DNA of 64,000 nucleotides from contig NW_002060963.1 of assembly GCF_000150275.1 (NCBI RefSeq), positions 19,669 through 83,668 of the forward strand. Direction: 5' to 3'. The notes beneath the pieces were generated by a model. That model did no database searches, was not told the origin of the DNA, and saw only the letters and a list, made by a program, of their open reading frames with translations. The translations under genes and the position numbers were made by a program. Below, one piece after another: positions 239-12,007 of the stretch. How positions within the stretch are numbered: the stretch's first letter is position 1; every line of letters starts with the position of its first letter. The DNA comes from Trichoplax adhaerens (lineage: Eukaryota > Animalia > Placozoa).

Positions 239-490
239 CAGGGACGGTTACGAACTATAAGCTTTTATGCAGTAAAACAGATGTCGTAGATTAAGGAGAA
301 GAGTTTCAGTATTGCATAAAGATTTACATGAGGTTATACGACATCTATTTTACATATTGTAAACTTTATTCTGTAATTCTGTGCTATAGACTGTAGTCAT
401 GATATTAGATATCATCGTTAGAAATGCGTAAATGGATCTCCACAATTATCCACTTATCTCCAATTTCATTTGCAATAGTAGAATAGTATC

Positions 491-984
491 TTTCTACTAT
501 ATAAAGTACTACAATATCTAGAATGATTATTACGGATGTATTTTTATTACAAATCTCCTTAGTAACAAGAAACCAGGTCTTAAACACTATCTTCACTAGT
601 ACTCGTGTTCCCAACTAACTTAGGGACCTATCGTAGTTGAACTAACTCTCAGCTACGCAAATAAGCTACTAATGAGTAATAGGTTTAAATGCTTCACTTT
701 ATTTTCGTTAAATTTAGTCGTAAAATGTACTAAAGAAAAACGTAAGAATAGTCTTAGCAATAATAGTCAAAAGATCCTGCAAGTGACTAATTGGAACTGA
801 GAAGCTAAGCTAGTGCTCCGCTTTTTTATAGTCTCGGCTCTTACCGATGGTACACTTGTGAATATTCTTGACATAGCGACTTACACTGTACAGTATACAT
901 ATCCTAGTATAGCAACGGCATTAATAATATTTTTCTACAATATAAAGTACTACAATATCTAGAATGATTATTACGGATGTATTT
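491..984. repeat. 53-bp direct repeat (491-543 and 932-984), possibly U5 fragments of a minus-strand LTR
   Basis: tttctac(t/a)atataaagtactacaatatctagaatgattattacggatgtattt occurs twice with 1 mismatch. The minus strand shows TATA-like ctataaaaa (~815-823) and ttgtaataaa (~542-551). Confidence 0.7.
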
Positions 985-1984
985 CGTAGTCAAAATTGTG
1001 TTTGTGTAGATCAGTAATCGTTGATTATATTTTATACAGACTGATAGTCTCCACAAACGGTTACTTTTAATGATTGTCGTCAGATGTTTAATTCTAATAG
1101 TCGATATATCATAGACTATGTTAATTCCTGTTAGGATACGGCAATTAAGGAAAATTAGACTTGTAGATCCTTCAAATATTTATTAAATGTATTTAGTTAT
1201 GTAAAATTAGAAGCTATCGAAAACTCTACGACCTTCATACAATAAGCCTCCCTCTGCTTTTTATCTGCTATTCTAGCTTACAGAAGCCTTGAGTACTGTA
1301 TTTTATGCAGGCATACTCAAAATAAATTACTACTTTTACCTTAAGACAACTGAGCTANNNNNNNNNNNNNNNNNNNNNNNNNNNNNNNNNNNNNNNNNNN
1401 NNNNNNNTGTACAGTACTACCTGAAAAAAGAAAAGCCTAGTGGGTATGAGGATCCCCATATCCTTGGATATCCTTACCGAAAATTGAAAATATAGAGATA
1501 ACTTAGTTCTATCCTTGCAGTGTTCAATTAATTAGACAGTACGTTGTAGTATTTGCGTAAGTAAACATCGAAAAAAGTAGGATATACGTTGACTATACCT
1601 GTTCATGATTTGGTTTCAGTTAAAATCAAACTGAAACTTTAAAAATAATAAGCAGATCAAATCGGCTTCAAATAAAATCTTTGCATATTAAATATGAAAG
1701 ATATAAACCATGTAATGCTGCTGCATCATACATGATCAACCAATCAATTAAATGTAAAGGCAATTTATAAGGCGCTGTATTGGCCACTGCATGGAGTTAT
1801 GTCAGTTACAGGCTTACAGTGCTCTGTACGCAAACTATTCTTTTACTACATCATCACAAGCCTTTATGTTTCCAAATTACTGTGCTTTGAATCAATTTTA
1901 CATCTTCCTCTTACATTTTGCAGTTCCATATCTAGTCATAAGTTTCTAAAGAAATGATTTAGTTAACTGTGAGGGAGATATATA

Positions 1985-3050
1985 CAACGCTAAACTAAGT
2001 GGAACATAATAAACAATAAATTATGTGGAACATAATAACGATAAACTATGTGGAGCAGTAGTGATACACCCATATTTGATATAGTTACGTTATTCTGAAT
2101 AGATATTATAGTGAAGCTAATATTAGATGATTGCTAACTACTATATTAGAAATTGTTGATGACTAATAGTAGCCAGTTGACTAATTATGGTACAAGATTT
2201 ATGTAGCTAGAAACACTGTAGTGGTTAAGATGCCCTTCGAAGAAAGGGCCTAGACGTTAATAGAAGAGTAGTGACATCTCAAGTAGAATGATTTAGATTG
2301 TAAAAAATAATGATGTACGATTAGAGAAAAGTATTTTGTTAGATGACTCATGTCTGATTGTTATAAATAGATTTAAGGAAATGTTTATAAGAAATGCAGA
2401 GATGAGCTCACAGAGGAGAAGAGACTTCACTTCGCTTTGAGCTCGGAATACTTTTAGAATTTAGACTAGATTCTTGTGGTAATTAATTATTGCTCTACTA
2501 TACCTAAAAACCTTGTAATAAAAGCCTTTTAGAAAATATCATTTGACTAAGATAGTTATTGTGAAACGTATTTATTACAGGAACATAATAACGATAAACT
2601 ATATGGAATATAATAACTATGTGGAACATAGTAAGAATAAATTACAGTATGTGGAATATAATTACTATAAAATTATTTGGAACATAACGAGAAACTGCGT
2701 AGAACATAGTAACGATAAACTATGTGGAAGTTAAATAACTATAAACTATGTAGAATAAAATAACAATAAATTGTGTGGAATATAATAACGATAAACTATG
2801 TGGAACATAACAGCCATGAACTATTTGGAACATAATTAATAAACTACGTGAAATAATAACGACAAACTACAGTACAGTACAGTATATGGAACATGGAAAT
2901 AATACACTATGTGGAGCATAATACCCATAAACTATGTAGATGATAATAAAAGAGATGGAATATAATAGTAAATTATGTGAAACTGCTTTAAGGTTGATAA
3001 ACTACCGTACGTCGAACACAACGATATACGTTTTAACGATAAACTACCAT
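1985..3050 (+). repeat. Degenerate 25/26-bp satellite (core acgataaactatgtggaacat), interrupted by a solo LTR
   Basis: aactatgtggaacata recurs at ~25-bp period in 1985-2056 and 2580-3050. Confidence 0.9.
2057..2579 (+). mobile_element. Solo LTR, family B (523 bp)
   Basis: Interrupts one satellite monomer exactly. Flanks are ggagc (2052-2056) and ggaac (2580-2584). Ends are agtagt...ttattaca (decayed TG...CA). TATA ttataaat at ~2361 and aataaa at ~2517. Confidence 0.7.
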
Positions 3051-3172
3051 GGTAGAACATACAAACAACTGGTACCGTACGGTATTTATATTAACAACAC
3101 AGCGACGAACCATGTACTTCATCTTAACTCTCTCTTTAAAACTTCCGGATTTTATACCGTCGACGGCAAATT

Positions 3173-3413
3173 ATACCGCAGGGTATCTGCAGAATCATAC
3201 CCTCAATGGCAGATCATACCGTAGGGTATCTGCAGAATCTACAGTAAATATCCCTAACACTTACTGTAGAAGTTCTAACCATTGTAGTTCTTCCCTATGG
3301 TCCCAACATAGCTATTCTGTGTAATGCTATAGGTTTCTGCACTATTTATATACAGTAAGCCTTCCTAACACTTGCAAGTCCTAATCATTGTAGTTCATCC
3401 CTATGGTCCTAAC
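3173..3413 (+). repeat. Local spacer subrepeats (24-bp pair and ~52-bp pair)
   Basis: ataccg(c/t)agggtatctgcagaatc at 3173 and 3216; cctaacactt...cattgtagttc(t/a)tccctatggtcc at ~3253 and ~3364. Confidence 0.8.
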
Positions 3414-3710
3414 TAAGGAACGTGAGTGAAGTTTAGATTTTGAAACTTCACCAAGTGCACATTATATACTACTGTATACTGAGTGTATAGTATACAGTAT
3501 AGTACACTATACAGTAGCATACTGTACTGTATAGGGGACTGTATAGTGTACAACGTATAACGTGATCTTTTTCCTATCCGATTCTTTAATATGAAGTTAA
3601 ACACTTTAGTATTAACCAATGTAACATAATATACCGTATGCATACACTGTATACCAGTGTGCTGCTGTGACAGTATTATATAATATACTGTATTAGAGTA
3701 GAAATATCTA

Positions 3711-4390
3711 TGTTAGGATAATTTTGTTAGCCTGTCCTTATTTAGTTAACTTCTAATTTAGATATGCTGTGTTTTAATATAACACTGACTTTTAATGGCA
3801 GTGGCATATATACATATACTGAAATTAATAGTTACGGTATATTAGAGAATGCGAATTATCTACTCACAGTTCGAATCATTGTGATTGTAACTTACTTCTG
3901 GTAGGTTGTAAATTATCGTGAAAATGTCTCGTGATAGGACATATCGTAATCTGACTATTCTGTATTAGTCATCAGATGTCTATGTTCGTAAATACTGTTA
4001 TCTGCATTTGGGAGCAGTAGCTAAAATTAATGTCTTGTTCAGTGAATGATTTCAAAGTTAATTCGTACTAACGATGACTCGTGAACTATTGAGGAAGAGT
4101 ATATAAATGCAATATATCGTGTAATAAAGTTAATTCTTAAACTTAGTGTTTAACGTAAAATATGAGGCGTCTAAGTCTTTGTGCAGTCTGCTAGTAGAGC
4201 AAAAGATAGATAGATTTGCTAAGTTGAGATTACTAGATTAACATTCTACTATTAGCTATAGCCTTTTTATTGCTAATGTTCTGTAAACCTTTTTATGACC
4301 GCAATAAAGTTATTCTTGTCCTAAGGCATTCAGTCTCAGCATTATTGTAAACTAGTGCTTCGGAACAGTTTAGAAATAACAATTATTACA
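3711..4390 (+). mobile_element. Probable LTR remnant, family C (boundaries uncertain)
   Basis: tgttag start, tatataaa at 4100-4107, aataaa at ~4303, ttattaca end at 4390. No TSD identified. Confidence 0.4.
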
Positions 4391-4541
4391 AGCACTGTAC
4401 TGCATAGTGATGAGAACGATGTTAGAGACCCACAATGCAGTTGTTACAAAACAGCTTTGCAACGAAATGACGTAATGTACGATCAATAAGTCAATTCCTT
4501 CAACCACGTATCGAGGAACGATATTTGCGCTATCAGGAATA

Positions 4542-4995
4542 CTTTTGCTCTACTAGCAGACAGCACAAAGACTTAGACGCCTCATATTTTACGTTAAACA
4601 CTAAGTTTAAGAATTAGAGAGGCTACTTTAGCTCTCTCTAAGATCCTTTTATACTATCCGGGCTCATCTTATTTGTCAACATATTTTGAACAAAACTCTA
4701 ACATAAATATTCTCATACGGGAACTATTATTTATTAATATTTTACTATAAACTTTGGCCACTGCTAGCCGCGCCATGTTTTCTTCCTCTTGACTCTTGCT
4801 TTGCCCTTTCGGAGCCTATCAGGTTACCCACCGGGCTCACAACTTCATCTCCCGCTAAGTAGGTAATTCTCGGCCTGCGGTGTGACTAATCTGAGCCCAA
4901 TCATCGCAGCTAAAAAACAGTCTCGCGACCGATCCAACATAGCGCTAACATAAAATCTAAAAATATCTAATTCTAATAGAGATCACATTATTACA
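4542..4995 (-). mobile_element. Truncated LTR, family D, sharing a 75-bp block with family C
   Basis: Minus strand starts tgtaat at 4995 and has tataaaa at 4647-4653. It shares the 14-mer tatgttagcgctat with family A near its 5' end. 4542-4616 is the reverse complement of 4131-4205. Confidence 0.5.
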
Positions 4996-6246
4996 ATACT
5001 ATATACTGTAGGAGAGGGTCTACCATAGAGGTAAAATGATTTTTTCTTTTACCTCCTGATATCTATAATATGGAGGGCACTCGCTTCAGGAACATAGCGT
5101 TGTGTTAATACAAGGAGGGAGAGTGTAAGACTTACCTGGCGTTCGAGGAGTATACGATCTAACGTAGAATTAATAGCTCAAGTTTTGCATTACATGAGCA
5201 TAAATAACAGCAAATTGTCGTGAGTGCATTATAACATCTTCAATTAGCAATTATCGCTTTAATCCAACGAATTGAAACATTCTATTCTGTTTGTTTGATA
5301 AGACTTTCTCAGAAAACTATTACGTTCACAATTGTCTTAAATTAGGTGTATATATGTAAGATATATTATCAGAAATTCCAAAATTGAAACGAAGCCTCAC
5401 GTTAGGTCCGTTACAACGTCAACTGTAGTACTTTAATTGTAAAACTTTCAACCTGGCTTCAAGATTAAGGTGTTTGCTGTGGCTATTACTGATGATACTC
5501 AGCGATTGTATACTGACGCTACTGGAATACTACACATTTCTGAGGTATTCTTTCAAGATGTGCGAAATCTGTATATTTAATTTTAAACAACATTGGCTTT
5601 AAAGAATGTAACACTGTAATTTTAAAAATTTTGCAGAAGTAAACACTTTTCGCTCGTAATGTCTGATACATAGAGTATTTTGGTGATGTACTATTTTGTT
5701 TTACGGATGGGAGGACCATAGCGATATGGATTAAAGAAAAATAGTTAAACCCTTAGAGTTTTACAACTTATTATTCTCTTCAATCATTAATATACAGTAT
5801 ACAGTCAATGAGAATCATTACAACAAGCTAACACATTTTCTTGTAAGGATCCAGAACTACAATAAAAAACATAAAATGGGAGTATTCGAAGAGTTAAGCT
5901 GTTGACAATGTATGATTAGCGTATTAAGCATTAGAATAAACATAACGTAAAAGGTAATTAACATTTTAAATAAAACTGATCTGTATCGTATTATAAGGTA
6001 CTCAAATAACCAGAAATAAACTATACAAAACAGGATAACGATAGACTATGTGGAACATTAGAACTATACAAAATAAGGTAACAGTAGACTACGTGGAACA
6101 TTACAACGATAAATTATACTATACAAAACAAGATAACGATAGACTATGTAGAACATTAGAACGAGAAGCTATACTATACAAAACAAGATACGATAGACTA
6201 TGTAGAACACTGTTACCAAGAAATTGATGAGAAAATGGCAAATTGT

Positions 6247-6936
6247 CCGCGTCAAATTGTACTAGACCCTGAAAAACATTACGGAACTATTACGGTAATA
6301 TTAAATTGTCTCTAGTTGTGTGGAACATGGTGTCAGTTCCTCCTATGTTAGCGCTATATATATACTATTGATTATCTATTGGTGGGAATCGGAAAGATGT
6401 AGCGGTGTTAATGGGCCTCTTGGCGAGAAGTGCAGCTGGAAGTCCTAGAAGATTGACTATTGGTCGAGGAGCTGAGAAACAAGGTTCGAGGCGATATAAA
6501 CAAGACGTGGATCATGTTAAAGGGCTTCTATACTGTAGCCGTTACGATATACTATTTTGTATAGGGAAAATTGTGATAGAGTTTTGATGTAAATATTTAC
6601 ATCAAAGATAGATATATAAGGAGGCTAATTTAATTGTAGAAATAGATAGATTCATTCATAGGTTAGCTTGAAGAAGTCATAGTGGATATTCTTTTGATAT
6701 TATATCTGTAGTTTCTAATGCCTGTATTTTAACATCGTAATAAACTTTTTATATTAACCGAGTCTTACTCATTCTTGTGAGTCGATTGTAGTTAATATAG
6801 GGAAGTAGTATTACAGGAACATTCCTGGATTACTAGAAAATACTGCTTACTTTCCTCTTTCTAGTAGTCCTTAAAATAAACACAGTATATTGATAAACCA
6901 GGTGGAGAACGGTCTAGGACAACTTGACGCGGCTGT
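6247..6936. mobile_element. Possible small MITE (~155 bp without the nested LTR)
   Basis: 22-bp inverted repeat at 6247-6268 and 6911-6932 (2 mismatches). The right end continues ...gcggCTG-TA, resembling a Tc1/mariner terminus. Confidence 0.4.
6288..6815 (+). mobile_element. Solo LTR, family A copy 1 (528 bp)
   Basis: 5-bp TSD ggaac (6283-6287 and 6816-6820). Ends are tattac...ttaca (5' TG decayed). TATA at ~6613 and aataaa at 6739. Near-identical to the two reverse copies. Confidence 0.88.
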
Positions 6937-8484
6937 ACAAGGTAATAGTATAGGATGGAAACAATATCAATATAGATTTGATATTTACAAGGGTGAATTG
7001 CATACTTTACAGCGTTAAATCCTATACACCGTAAAATTAATCCAATGCAGTAAACTTTCTGTTTTGATATTACGAGGGTGGATTTAATATTTTACAGCGT
7101 GAAATTAATTTAATGCGGTAAATTATCCGGTTTCGAGTAGAGCATTACAATAGTAAACTATATACAGTACATGAAATATAAAACAATCAACTACGTGAAA
7201 CATATAAACGATAAGGTGTGTGGAACATTAAAACTATACTGTAAACTACAGAATGCAGAATATAAAACGATCAACTATGTGAAACCAAAGAACGATAACC
7301 TATGTAGAATATAAATACGATAAACTAAGTGGAACGTTGAAACTATGGACTATGTGGAATATAATTACTATAAACTATGTGGAACATTAAAGCCATACTA
7401 TAAACAAAGAATGCCGAATAACGAACGATTAACTACGTGAAACATAGAAACGATAACCTATGTGGAATATAAATACGATAAACTATGTGGAACATACATA
7501 CGATAAACCATGTGAAACATTGAAACTATCCTGTGAACTAAAGAATGCGGAATATAAAACGCTCAACTATGTAAAACACAAAAACGATAACCTATGTGGA
7601 AGATGAATACGATAAAGTAAAGAATGCGGAACATAAAACCATCAACTAATTGGAACATAAAAAGGATAACCTATGTAAAATATCAATACGATAAACTATG
7701 TGGAACATTCAAACTATTAATTATTTGGAAAATAAATACCATAAACTATGTGAAAAATAGTAACGATAAGCTCTATGCTACCAATCAAGACAAACCATGT
7801 GAAATATCGTTACCAAGAACTGATATGAAAATGTTCAAGTTTATGGGCTAATTGAACTATGTGGAACATACATACGTTAAACTATGTAAAACATTTAAAC
7901 TACACTGTAAACTAATATACTGTATACGGAATATGAAACCATCAACTAGAGTATATAATGTATAAATACGATAACCTACGTGGAAAATATATACGATAAG
8001 CTACGTGGAACATACGAGCGATCAACTATGTGGAACATCGTTACTATAGACTATTTGGAACACAAAGCTTTAAACTATGTGGAACATTAAAACTATACTG
8101 TAAACTAAAGAGTGCAACTATACTGTAAATTACAGAATGTAGGAAAAAAACGATCAACTATGTGAAACATAAGAACGACAACCTATGTGGAACATTGAAA
8201 CTATGGACTATGTGGAACATAATTACTATAAACTATGTGGAACATAGAAACCGTACTATAAACTAAAGAATGCTAAATGTAAAACGATTAACTACGTGAA
8301 ACATAAAAACGATAACCTATGTGGAAAATAAAATAGGATAGACTATGTGGAACATTAAAACTATACTATAAACTAATATAAACATGATAAACTAGTTGGA
8401 ATATATATACGATAAACTATGTGGAACATTGGAACTATATTGTAAACTAAAGAATGCGGAATACAAAACCATCAACTATGTAAC

Positions 8485-9008
8485 TGTAATACTACTTCCC
8501 TATATTAACTACAATCGACTCACAAGAATGAGTAAGACTCGGTTAATATAAAAAGTTTATTACGATGTTAAAATACAGGCATTAGAAACTACAGATATAA
8601 TATCAAAAGAATATCCACTATGACTTCTTCAAGCTAACCTATGAGTAAATCTGTCTCTACAATTATATTAGCCTCCTTATATATCTATCTTTGATGTAAA
8701 TATTTACATCAAAACTCTATCACAATTTTCCCTATACAAAATAGTATATCGTAACGGCTACAGTATAGAAGCCCTTTAACATCATCCGCGTCTTGTTTAT
8801 ATCGCCTCGAACCTTGTTTCTCAGCTCCTCGACCAATAGTCAATCTTCTAGGACTTCCAGCTGCGCTTTTCGCCAAGAGGCCCATTAACACCGCTACATC
8901 TTTCCGATTCCCACCAATAGATAATCAATAGTATATATATAGCGCTAACATAGGAGGAACTGAAATCATGTTCCACACAACTAGAGACAATTTAATATTA
9001 CCGTTACA
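8485..9008 (-). mobile_element. Solo LTR, family A copy 2 (524 bp)
   Basis: TGTAA...TTACA termini and a perfect 5-bp TSD gtaac (8480-8484 and 9009-9013). Confidence 0.92.
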
Positions 9009-9515
9009 GTAACGCACAAAAACGATAACCTATGTAAAACAGAAAATACGATAAACTATGTGGAACATTAAAACGATAAACTAAGAGGAACATGAAGACT
9101 ATGAGCTATGTAGAACATAGATACCATAAACTATGCGAAACATTAAAACTATACTGTAAACTATAGAGTGCAGAAGATAAAACCCATAACCTATCTGGAA
9201 CAAACATCAATACGATAAACTATGTGGGACATTAAAACTATACTGTAAGCTAAAGAATGCGGAATATAAAACCATCAAGTAATTGGAACATAAATACTGT
9301 AAACTGTATGGAATATTAAAACTATAAACTATGTGAAACATAGTAACGATGAGCTATGTAGTACAAATCAAGAAAACTATGTGGAACACCAGTACCAAGA
9401 AATGATATGAAAATGTCCAAGTTTATAATCTAATTGAGCTATGTGGAAATAAATACGATAAAGTATGTGGAACATTAAAACTACACTGTAAACTAATGTA
9501 TACGGAATATAAAAC

Positions 9516-10041
9516 TGTAATACGACTTCCCTATATTAACTACAATCGACTCACAAGAATGAGTAAGACTCGGTTAATATAAAAAGTTTATTACGATGTT
9601 AAAATACAGGCATTAGAAACTACAGATATAATATCAAAAGAATATCTACTATGTCTTCTTCAAGCTAACCTATGAATGAATCTATCTACCTCTACAATTA
9701 TATTAGCCTCCTTATATATCTATCTTTGATGTAAATATTTACATCAAAACTCTATCACAATTTTCCCTATACAAAATAGTATATCGTAACGGCTACAGTA
9801 TAGAAGCCCTTTAACATGATCCACGTCTTGTTTATATCGCCTCGAACCTTGTTTCTCAGCTCCTCGACCAATAGTCAATCTTCTAGGACTTCCAGCTGCA
9901 CTTCTCGCCAAGAGGCCCATTAACACCGCTACATCTTTCCGATTCCCACCAATAGATAATCAATAGTATATATAGCGCTAACATAGGAGGAACTGACACC
10001 ATGTTCCACACAACTAGAGACAATTTAATATTACCGTTACA
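9516..10041 (-). mobile_element. Solo LTR, family A copy 3 (526 bp)
   Basis: TGTAA...TTACA termini. Flanks are aaaac (9511-9515) and aaacc (10042-10046), a TSD with one mismatch. Confidence 0.9.
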
Positions 10042-10660
10042 AAACCCATCAACTACAGTATGTTATACATAAAAACGATAACCTACAGTAAGTGGAACAT
10101 TGTAACTATGAGCTATGTGGAACATAAATACTGTAAACTATAAATAATAAAACACGACAAACTATGTGGAACATTAAAACTATACTATAAACTAAAGAGT
10201 GCGAAATATAAACGCTGAATTATGTGGAACATAGATACTATGCACTACGTAAAAAATTGAAACTATACTGTAAACTAAACAATGCGGAATATAAAACCAT
10301 CCACTAATTAGAATATAAAAACGATAACCTATAGTAAGTAGAACATCGTTACGATAAACTATGTGGAACATAAATACTGTAAACTTTATGCAATAGCCTA
10401 ACTATAAGCTAACCTCAGAAACTATATGGATTAGCGTAACTATAAACTATGTGGAACATCGTTACTAAGAAACGATATGAAAATATCGCAAGTTTATAGA
10501 CTATGTGGAACATTGAAACTATACTGTAAACTAAACAATGCGTAATATAAAACCAACAACTATTTAGAACATAAAAAACGATAACCTACAGTAAGTGGAA
10601 CATTGTAACTATGAGCTATGTGGAACATAAATACTGTAAACTATATGGAATATGAAAACT

Positions 10661-11045
10661 ATAAACTATGTGGAACATCGTTACTAAGAAACGATATGGA
10701 ATAACCAATCTATAAACTATGTGGAACATCGTTACTAAGAAACGATATGGAATAGCCTATATATAAACTATGTGGAACATCGCTACTAACAAACGATATG
10801 GAATTGCCTATCTATAAACTATGTGGAACATCGTTACTAAGAAACGATATGAACATTGCTACTAAGAAACGATATGGAATAGCCAATCTATAAACTATGT
10901 GGAACATCGTTACTAAGAAACGATATGGAATAGCCAATCTATAAACTATGTGGAACATCCTTACTAAGAAACTATATGGAACAGCTTAACTATAAACTAT
11001 GTGGAACATCGTTACTAAGAAACGATAAGGAACAACCTAACTATA
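10661..11045 (+). repeat. 51-bp tandem repeat (25+26 dimer)
   Basis: ataaactatgtggaacatcgttactaagaaacgatatggaatagccaatct, about 7 copies, with one internal deletion near 10850. Confidence 0.92.
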
Positions 11046-11742
11046 CACTATGTGGAACATCGTTACTTAGATTAACTATAAACTATGTGGAACATCGTTA
11101 CTTAGATTAACTATAAACTATGTGGAACATCGTTACTTAGATTAACTATAAACTATGTGGAACATCGTTACTTAGATTAACTATAAACTATGTGGAACAT
11201 CGTTACTTAGATTAACTATAAACTATGTGGAACATCGTTACTTAGATTAACTATAAACTATGTGGAACATCGTTACTTAGATTAACTATAAACTATGTGG
11301 AACATCGTTACTTAGATTAACTATAAACTATGTGGAACATCGTTACTTAGATTAACTATAAACTATGTGGAACATCGTTACTTAGATTAACTATAAACTA
11401 TGTGGAACATCGTTACTTAGATTAACTATAAACTATGTGGAACATCGTTACTTAGATTAACTATAAACTATGTGGAACATCGTTACTTAGATTAACTATA
11501 AACTATGTGGAACATCGTTACTTAGATTAACTATAAACTATGTGGAACATCGTTACTTAGATTAACTATAAACTATGTGGAACATCGTTACTTAGATTAA
11601 CTATAAACTATGTGGAACATCGTTACTTAGATTAACTATAAACTATGTGGAACATCGTTACTTAGATTAACTATAAACTATGTGGAACATCGTTACTTAG
11701 ATTAACTATAAACTATGTGGAACATCGTTACTTAGATTAACT
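11046..11742 (+). repeat. Perfect 35-bp tandem repeat, ~20 copies, running into a gap
   Basis: aactatgtggaacatcgttacttagattaactata repeated identically. Confidence 0.98.
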
Positions 11743-11792
11743 NNNNNNNNNNNNNNNNNNNNNNNNNNNNNNNNNNNNNNNNNNNNNNNNNN

Positions 11793-11973
11793 AGCGCATT
11801 ATCACAAGTGCGCCGATAATTCAATCGACAATGATAGATGAAGTCGTGAGATCAACATACCACCACATCAACTAACTTATCAGCTGAATGTCAATAATAC
11901 ATTGCTAGCTACATGCGTTTCCCTTTTAACGGTTTCACGTACTATTTAACTCTCTTTTCAAAGTTCTTTTCAT

Positions 11974-12007
<34 letters not shown>

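Follow-up and report, generated by a model that had tools for sequence, protein, structure and literature searches.

Long terminal repeat (LTR) retrotransposons that target the ribosomal DNA (rDNA) or accumulate in it are already known, including the Galadriel chromoviruses, Hideaway and the copia and gypsy cases in the spacer, and remnants of transposable elements (TEs) in rDNA spacers have been described as widespread (PMC10946416). In fission yeast, the protein Sap1 binds the integrase of Tf1 and predicts the sites of Tf1 insertion; among its further binding sites are a conserved one within the Tf LTR and Ter1, the fork barrier of the rDNA spacer (PMC5371812). The elements described here, which are a placozoan addition to the known rDNA-associated LTR elements, lie in a stretch of 64,000 nucleotides from Trichoplax adhaerens (C1394:19669-83668, hereafter the window; G + C content about 32%) in an assembly of 105.6 Mb and 1414 contigs. 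Trichoplax is a textbook example of a TE-poor animal genome. Published surveys give it an LTR retrotransposon content of 0.04-0.16% and do not describe solo LTRs (PMC2871265, PMC6057997); the word "solo" occurs nowhere in PMC2871265, and most interspersed repeats are left unclassified in PMC6057997. This paper discusses four solo LTRs in one rDNA spacer of the window, focusing primarily on why one of the two families to which they belong is concentrated in such spacers while the other is scattered over the genome.

All four elements, which are 523-528 bp long and are named below by their first positions (2057, 6288, 8485 and 9516; Table 1), were confirmed at the coordinates and with the flanks given in an earlier note on this DNA. 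Their host is the long intergenic spacer of one rDNA unit: positions 16-252 of the window are repeated at 15070-15306 with 97% identity, therefore 253-11742 constitute the intergenic spacer of a single unit. Three of them split a monomer of an A-rich satellite, and the 6288 copy lies inside an insert resembling a MITE (a miniature transposable element with inverted repeats), as the note had it; this insert is bounded by 22-nt terminal inverted repeats (TIRs). Empty paralogous monomers of the same array show that the flank pairs are genuine 5-bp target-site duplications (TSDs) of a once-continuous monomer. LTR length across both families is 523-560 bp, and the termini are 5-bp inverted ends, TGTAA...TTACA in family A and TGTAG...TTACA in the relatives of the family B copy. 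Two window copies have mutated 5' ends, AG at 2057 and TA at 6288, where their relatives begin with TG; compared with its relatives, the 2057 copy has a T>A change at base 1 and an internal deletion of about 22 bp near the 5' end. As motif matches only, a TATA-like motif is found at LTR position 324 in family A and 306 in family B, and AATAAA at positions 450 and 461, respectively. A 5-bp TSD that varies between copies flanks most full-length family A copies and 19 of 28 family B copies (11 perfect and 8 with one mismatch), and the words duplicated by family B are mutually unrelated.

The copies at 8485 and 9516 point the same way, are separated by 507 bp and occupy the same monomer type in two different higher-order repeats. 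The insertion site of the 9516 copy is 13 bp upstream of the equivalent 8485 site in the monomer and each copy has its own TSD, so these are two independent insertions and not products of array duplication, in agreement with what the earlier note had concluded from the different TSDs. A composite of the two, resembling a terminal-repeat retrotransposon in miniature (TRIM), was rejected because the outer flanks are unmatched and a separate TSD surrounds each copy. Each of the four is an ordinary solo LTR that arose by its own insertion; since no full-length relative is present in the assembly, they are assigned to the solo LTRs by LTR anatomy alone. The earlier note had also pointed out that the 48-kb genic part of the window (16-64 kb) is free of these elements. 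This is correct for copies of either family but uninformative, because fewer than 0.2 copies are expected there.

The note had spoken of several families, but there are only two. By BLAST, the 6288, 8485 and 9516 copies match the reference copy with 96.6-100% identity and constitute family A, whereas the 2057 copy, the sole window member of family B, has no sequence relation to them. Family B has at least 269 candidate copies genome-wide, and the 40 of them that were scored are 85-89% identical to the window copy. The satellite is absent from the flanks at 29 of 30 sampled loci, that is, at all 29 besides the window copy. The 2057 insertion, 96-97% identical and with matching spacer surroundings, is also found in C1367, C1383 and C1296, and being common to four rDNA units it represents one old event inherited by them. 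With one further copy on the rDNA scaffold C1377, the spacer excess of family B comes to two events, about 6-fold (p = 0.04). Family B is not targeted; it is dispersed, with at most a modest spacer excess.

For family A, all 31 candidate places genome-wide were scored, and independent events were grouped by junction sequence and by similarity of their flanks to the window spacer and were located relative to the assembled 18S copies (C1394, C1367, four on C1377, C1383, C1296 and C1025). This gave about 22 independent insertions, 11 of which are on rDNA-type contigs (C1394, C1377, C1383, C1296, C1367 and C838), 7 on large scaffolds and 4 on tiny unplaced contigs. Among the 11 on rDNA-type contigs, 7 are in the satellite and 4 in non-satellite spacer. 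The target size was obtained by counting a satellite 15-mer with at most one mismatch (615 matches genome-wide versus 16 for a control), calibrated with the window, where 57 matches correspond to a satellite length of 4.27 kb and a spacer length of 11.5 kb; on this basis the whole assembly is estimated to contain about 45 kb of satellite and 121 kb of spacer-type sequence. Against 11 spacer events observed, 0.03 are expected under uniform insertion, or 0.09 if 450 kb of target is allowed (Poisson p < 1e-19). Family A is thus enriched about 120-440 times over the uniform expectation, with 11 of 22 events in about 0.1-0.4% of the assembly, and its rDNA concentration differs from that of family B (Fisher p = 1e-4).

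Enrichment of one compartment relative to other families, which characterizes a region-targeted LTR element, is found for family A only. One fixed rDNA coordinate, which characterizes elements of the R1/R2 type, is not found, since the eleven junctions differ and occur in spacer both with and without the satellite, and since one insertion in two is off the rDNA-type contigs. The genome-wide census with flanks shows a strong concentration in rDNA spacers, in line with the targeting proposed in the earlier note, for family A, but not for family B, whose copies are scattered with unrelated TSDs; nor is the claimed specificity for the satellite itself supported. The reading favoured here, to which a probability of roughly 55% is given, is that family A had a regional integration preference for rDNA spacer chromatin. 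That an integration bias caused the enrichment, and that a tether of some kind lay behind it, is what we infer from the surviving copies.

Another explanation is that family A integrated nearly at random and accumulated passively in the spacer, a tolerant and poorly purged haven, so that its concentration would result from selection and drift. It is true that mobile elements of at least four kinds (families A and B, the foldback/MITE-like repeat and a small TIR insert) have left remnants in this one spacer, and the modest excess of family B points the same way. However, family B and the MITE-like repeat still occupy hundreds of places outside the rDNA, which means that other parts of the genome tolerate solo LTRs. 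When the MITE-like repeat (733 candidates) was used as a control, its window copy was the sole one on an rDNA-type contig among the 40 scored, an enrichment of about 1-fold, and the strong enrichment, 100-400 times as against about 6 times for the older family B, belongs to the less diverged family: copies of family A are 90-100% identical pairwise, those of family B 85-89% identical to the window copy. Longer purging therefore cannot explain the stronger confinement of family A. Furthermore, concerted evolution leads to no increase in the per-bp density of neutral insertions along the lineage of a unit. Passive accumulation is consequently possible but doubtful.

The family A copies might also descend from only one or two original insertions, multiplied and moved when the satellite underwent unequal crossing-over or gene conversion. 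Some copies are indeed orthologous between units, such as the 6288 copy, which is the same as those at C1383:16124 and C1296:5434 with identical flanks, and several insertions common to C1377/C1394 pairs, and LTR copies are homogenised within a unit. But the eleven events have different junctions and occur in both orientations, and most of those with both ends preserved have their own 5-bp duplication of a once-continuous sequence, while recombination generates no new TSDs. It is very improbable, then, that recombination produced the concentration. As to the homogenisation itself, the 6288 LTR resembles the non-orthologous copies beside it in the window (98%) more closely than its orthologues in C1383 and C1296 (95-96%), which indicates gene conversion among the LTR copies within a unit.

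The earlier note had taken NNAAC to be the target site. All four window TSDs do read NNAAC on the + strand, but the motif is absent, in either orientation, from all eight family A insertions outside the window that have a readable duplication; the family A duplications there read, in LTR sense, GTGGC, CCTGG, AGACC, AGTAT, GTACT, GCGAA, GCTAC, GGTCC, TACGT and GATAT. In the spacer, NNAAC is always on the A-rich strand of the satellite, whichever the orientation of the element, and is therefore a trait of the target DNA rather than of the integrase. AAC-ending 5-mers make up 7% of the satellite + strand versus 1.5% of the genic part. Family A TSDs, in LTR sense, have G first in 9 of 13 (p = 3e-5) and C last in 6 of 13 (p = 0.01), and 82% of the GNNNC sites of the satellite are GGAAC, GAAAC or GTAAC. 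The weak G1/C5 preference, together with the A-rich satellite, gives rise to the apparent NNAAC rule, and the NNAAC target is largely a by-product of spacer base composition.

These data also bear on sequence-specific homing, in which the elements would recognise a short satellite word, either NNAAC or the GTTCCAC core. Besides the uniform NNAAC of the window, 6 of 8 satellite insertions have their TSD in the 10-bp core-equivalent (p 0.002-0.03 by the definition used); this is because the core holds the few G/C bases of the satellite, matching the weak G1/C5 preference. Insertions within the core are offset by 2-4 bp from one another, three lie outside it, and the satellite core is absent within 100 bp of the non-rDNA family A sites. 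Moreover, the TSDs of family B elsewhere are unrelated. With respect to the satellite strand, family A is inserted 4 times in sense and 3 times in antisense orientation, and the 1.5 kb around its non-rDNA copies contain no tRNA, 5S or any other Rfam family. Homing to a short word is largely refuted and can be given very little credence.

The satellite and family A nevertheless share a word. The satellite core 10-mer TGTGGAACAT is present at LTR positions 32-41, in U3, in nearly all full family A copies, and a subfamily (A2) has it twice in tandem. The probability of finding it by chance in one 526-bp LTR is about 1e-3. Genome-wide the core word has 731 matches versus 188 for the reversed control, the surplus being the satellite (about 540 repeats). 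Derivation of the satellite from the family A LTR, or the reverse, is unsupported, as beyond the core there are only matches of 12-16 bp, no better than with control repeats. A host DNA-binding protein that recognised TGTGGAACAT could have homed family A to the rDNA spacer, and such a Sap1-like tether would explain the concentration of the family; by analogy, it would correspond in an animal to what the Sap1-Tf1-rDNA Ter1 system is in fission yeast. This is, on the whole, unlikely.

Under the favoured reading, a regional preference for spacer chromatin, the four elements would be the remnants, after LTR-LTR recombination, of extinct LTR retrotransposons. Family B would have integrated genome-wide and left one old spacer copy that several rDNA units later inherited, while the small and less diverged family A would have integrated preferentially into the rDNA spacer, satellite and non-satellite alike. 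The likeliest reason would be a tethering of its integrase to some feature of spacer chromatin rather than to a DNA word, and at the nucleotide level the family would have had a weak preference for G first and C last in the duplicated 5-mer. Several points weigh against this. Only survivors are available, with no intact element, integrase or new insertion. The rDNA is poorly assembled, with gaps, small contigs and few units, so that the target size and the independence of some truncated copies are estimates. Half of the family A insertions are off rDNA-type contigs and without a core within 100 bp, and any tether was therefore not obligatory. Finally, gene conversion among the LTR copies within a unit blurs the ages which were used above against selective retention.

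A profile search of the whole assembly gave 13 matches to reverse transcriptase (RT; PF00078) and 11 to integrase (PF00665), a scarcity which agrees with the published surveys (PMC2871265, PMC6057997). No RT or integrase match lies within 1.5 kb of any family A or B LTR, and no sequence like a primer-binding site (PBS) or polypurine tract (PPT) was found in the flanks of any copy. The full-length parents of both families, whose recovery the earlier note had envisaged, are absent from the assembly, as is any coding sequence of family A, and every copy seen is solo, as the note had stated for the four in the window. Several candidates were rejected as parents for having no family A or B LTR within 1.5 kb, namely, a Ty3/gypsy fragment (C890/C39), an element with gag, protease (PR), integrase (IN) and RT (C1162), Polinton-type integrases (C1366, C681 and C1389) and bacterial IS3-type genes (C1329). 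A gag-like open reading frame 1.1 kb from the C999 copy is on the opposite strand and hence is not the interior of that LTR, and a PBS-like word that follows a diverged subfamily copy (C1414, C314) was set aside because no coding interior was found.

Some of these candidates have features of their own. The C1162 element (C1162:4053-7340, L062) has the order gag(CCHC)-protease-integrase-RT in frames of 202, 578 and 366 aa, a Gmr1-like order of gypsy-type domains. At C1366:25852-29118 (L067; also L063 and L064) a Polinton/Maverick-type integrase with a C-terminal chromodomain stands beside an adenovirus-type protease frame, and the rDNA-spacer satellite has a block (C1366:24163-25239) about 2 kb away from this copy. 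The integrase at C1329:9911-16940 (L060, L065) is of the IS3 type with HTH_21, a bacterial insertion-sequence signature, and these genes are probably symbiont or contaminant DNA.

The coordinates of the window features are collected in Table 1.

Table 1. Features of the rDNA unit and its spacer in the window (positions in the window; TSD, target-site duplication).
Feature	Position	Strand	Remarks
Family B solo LTR, 523 bp	2057-2579	+	TSD GGAGC 2052-2056 / GGAAC 2580-2584, within satellite core
Family A solo LTR	6288-6815	+	TSD GGAAC 6283-6287 / 6816-6820; inside MITE-like insert
Family A solo LTR	8485-9008	-	TSD GTAAC 8480-8484 / 9009-9013; interrupts satellite monomer
Family A solo LTR (reference copy)	9516-10041	-	TSD AAAAC 9511-9515 / AAACC 10042-10046, one mismatch; interrupts monomer
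A-rich rDNA-spacer satellite, 25-35 bp, core TGTGGAACAT	main block 7140-11742	+	
Smaller satellite blocks	1990-3000 and 6000-6230		
MITE-like insert, 22-nt terminal inverted repeats	ends 6247-6268 and 6911-6932	.	About 160 bp without the 6288 LTR it hosts
Foldback/MITE-like dispersed repeat	3663-4616	.	733 candidate places genome-wide; used as control family
rDNA genes	11666-14564	-	Rfam matches; remainder concealed by N runs
28S 5' part	11666-12318	-	Rfam
5.8S	12574-12727	-	Rfam
18S 5' part	13966-14564	-	Rfam

The predominant repeat type in the window is the ACAGT pentamer, and ACAGT pentamer repeats are a hallmark of Trichoplax (PMC2871265). Between the assembled rDNA units the 18S segments are 99-100% identical while the spacers are only about 70-92% alike, with differing insertions, and homogenisation of the spacer between units is therefore poor. 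The 18S copies on scaffold C1377 are spaced about 100 kb apart. Within the satellite, positions 11038-11742 are a perfectly homogeneous tandem array of at least 20 identical 35-bp units, which abuts a gap of 50 Ns beside the truncated 28S and contrasts with the diverged satellite farther out; this suggests a very recent expansion or an assembly collapse. The foldback/MITE-like repeat combines roughly 530 bp with an inverted arm of roughly 175 bp, its relatives are 85-90% identical, and the window copy has an extra internal segment. In addition, the spacer on C1383 (L010:2286-2996) has an insert of about 370 bp that splits the satellite directly after the GTTCCAC core; it begins with TGTTACAAC and ends with ATCACA, and belongs to neither family A nor family B.

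By themselves, the two solo-LTR families contribute at least 300 copies, or about 0.15% of the genome. LTR elements were therefore more active in the past of Trichoplax than homology searches had indicated, and practically all of them survive only as solo LTRs. A dispersed and an rDNA-concentrated family side by side in one compact genome are a clean natural example of safe-haven targeting, which is already known from yeasts and plants. It is also known in Dictyostelium.

With R1/R2, the other rDNA-specific non-LTR elements and the piggyBac element Pokey, family A shares its residence in rDNA. However, R1, R2 and Pokey occupy a fixed 28S position, which they enter by target-primed reverse transcription or by cut-and-paste at TTAA, whereas the elements described here have LTR anatomy and variable spacer sites. 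Like Tf1/Tf2 of Schizosaccharomyces pombe, which are guided by Sap1 (PMC5371812), family A would be regional and not word-specific, and its U3 holds the satellite core 10-mer; unlike family A, Tf1 mainly hits RNA polymerase II promoters, and the 10-mer shared by family A and the satellite could be due to chance (about 1e-3). The Galadriel-clade chromoviruses of the Ty3/gypsy group, such as TRRT of tomato, Monkey of banana and Beon of beet, resemble family A in that they target or accumulate in 35S rDNA and have copies elsewhere too (PMC10946416). They differ from it in that they are mostly in or at the 18S gene and include intact elements whose integrase has a chromodomain, while here only solo LTRs are found, in an animal spacer. 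The resemblance extends to Hideaway in Ascobolus, the Ty1/copia case in Allium cernuum and the Ty3/gypsy case in Hepialus humuli, where LTR remnants are in the 28S-18S spacer and some occur outside rDNA as well; those, however, are single cases without a measured genome-wide enrichment, whereas in Trichoplax the census puts the spacer excess above 100-fold for family A but not for family B.

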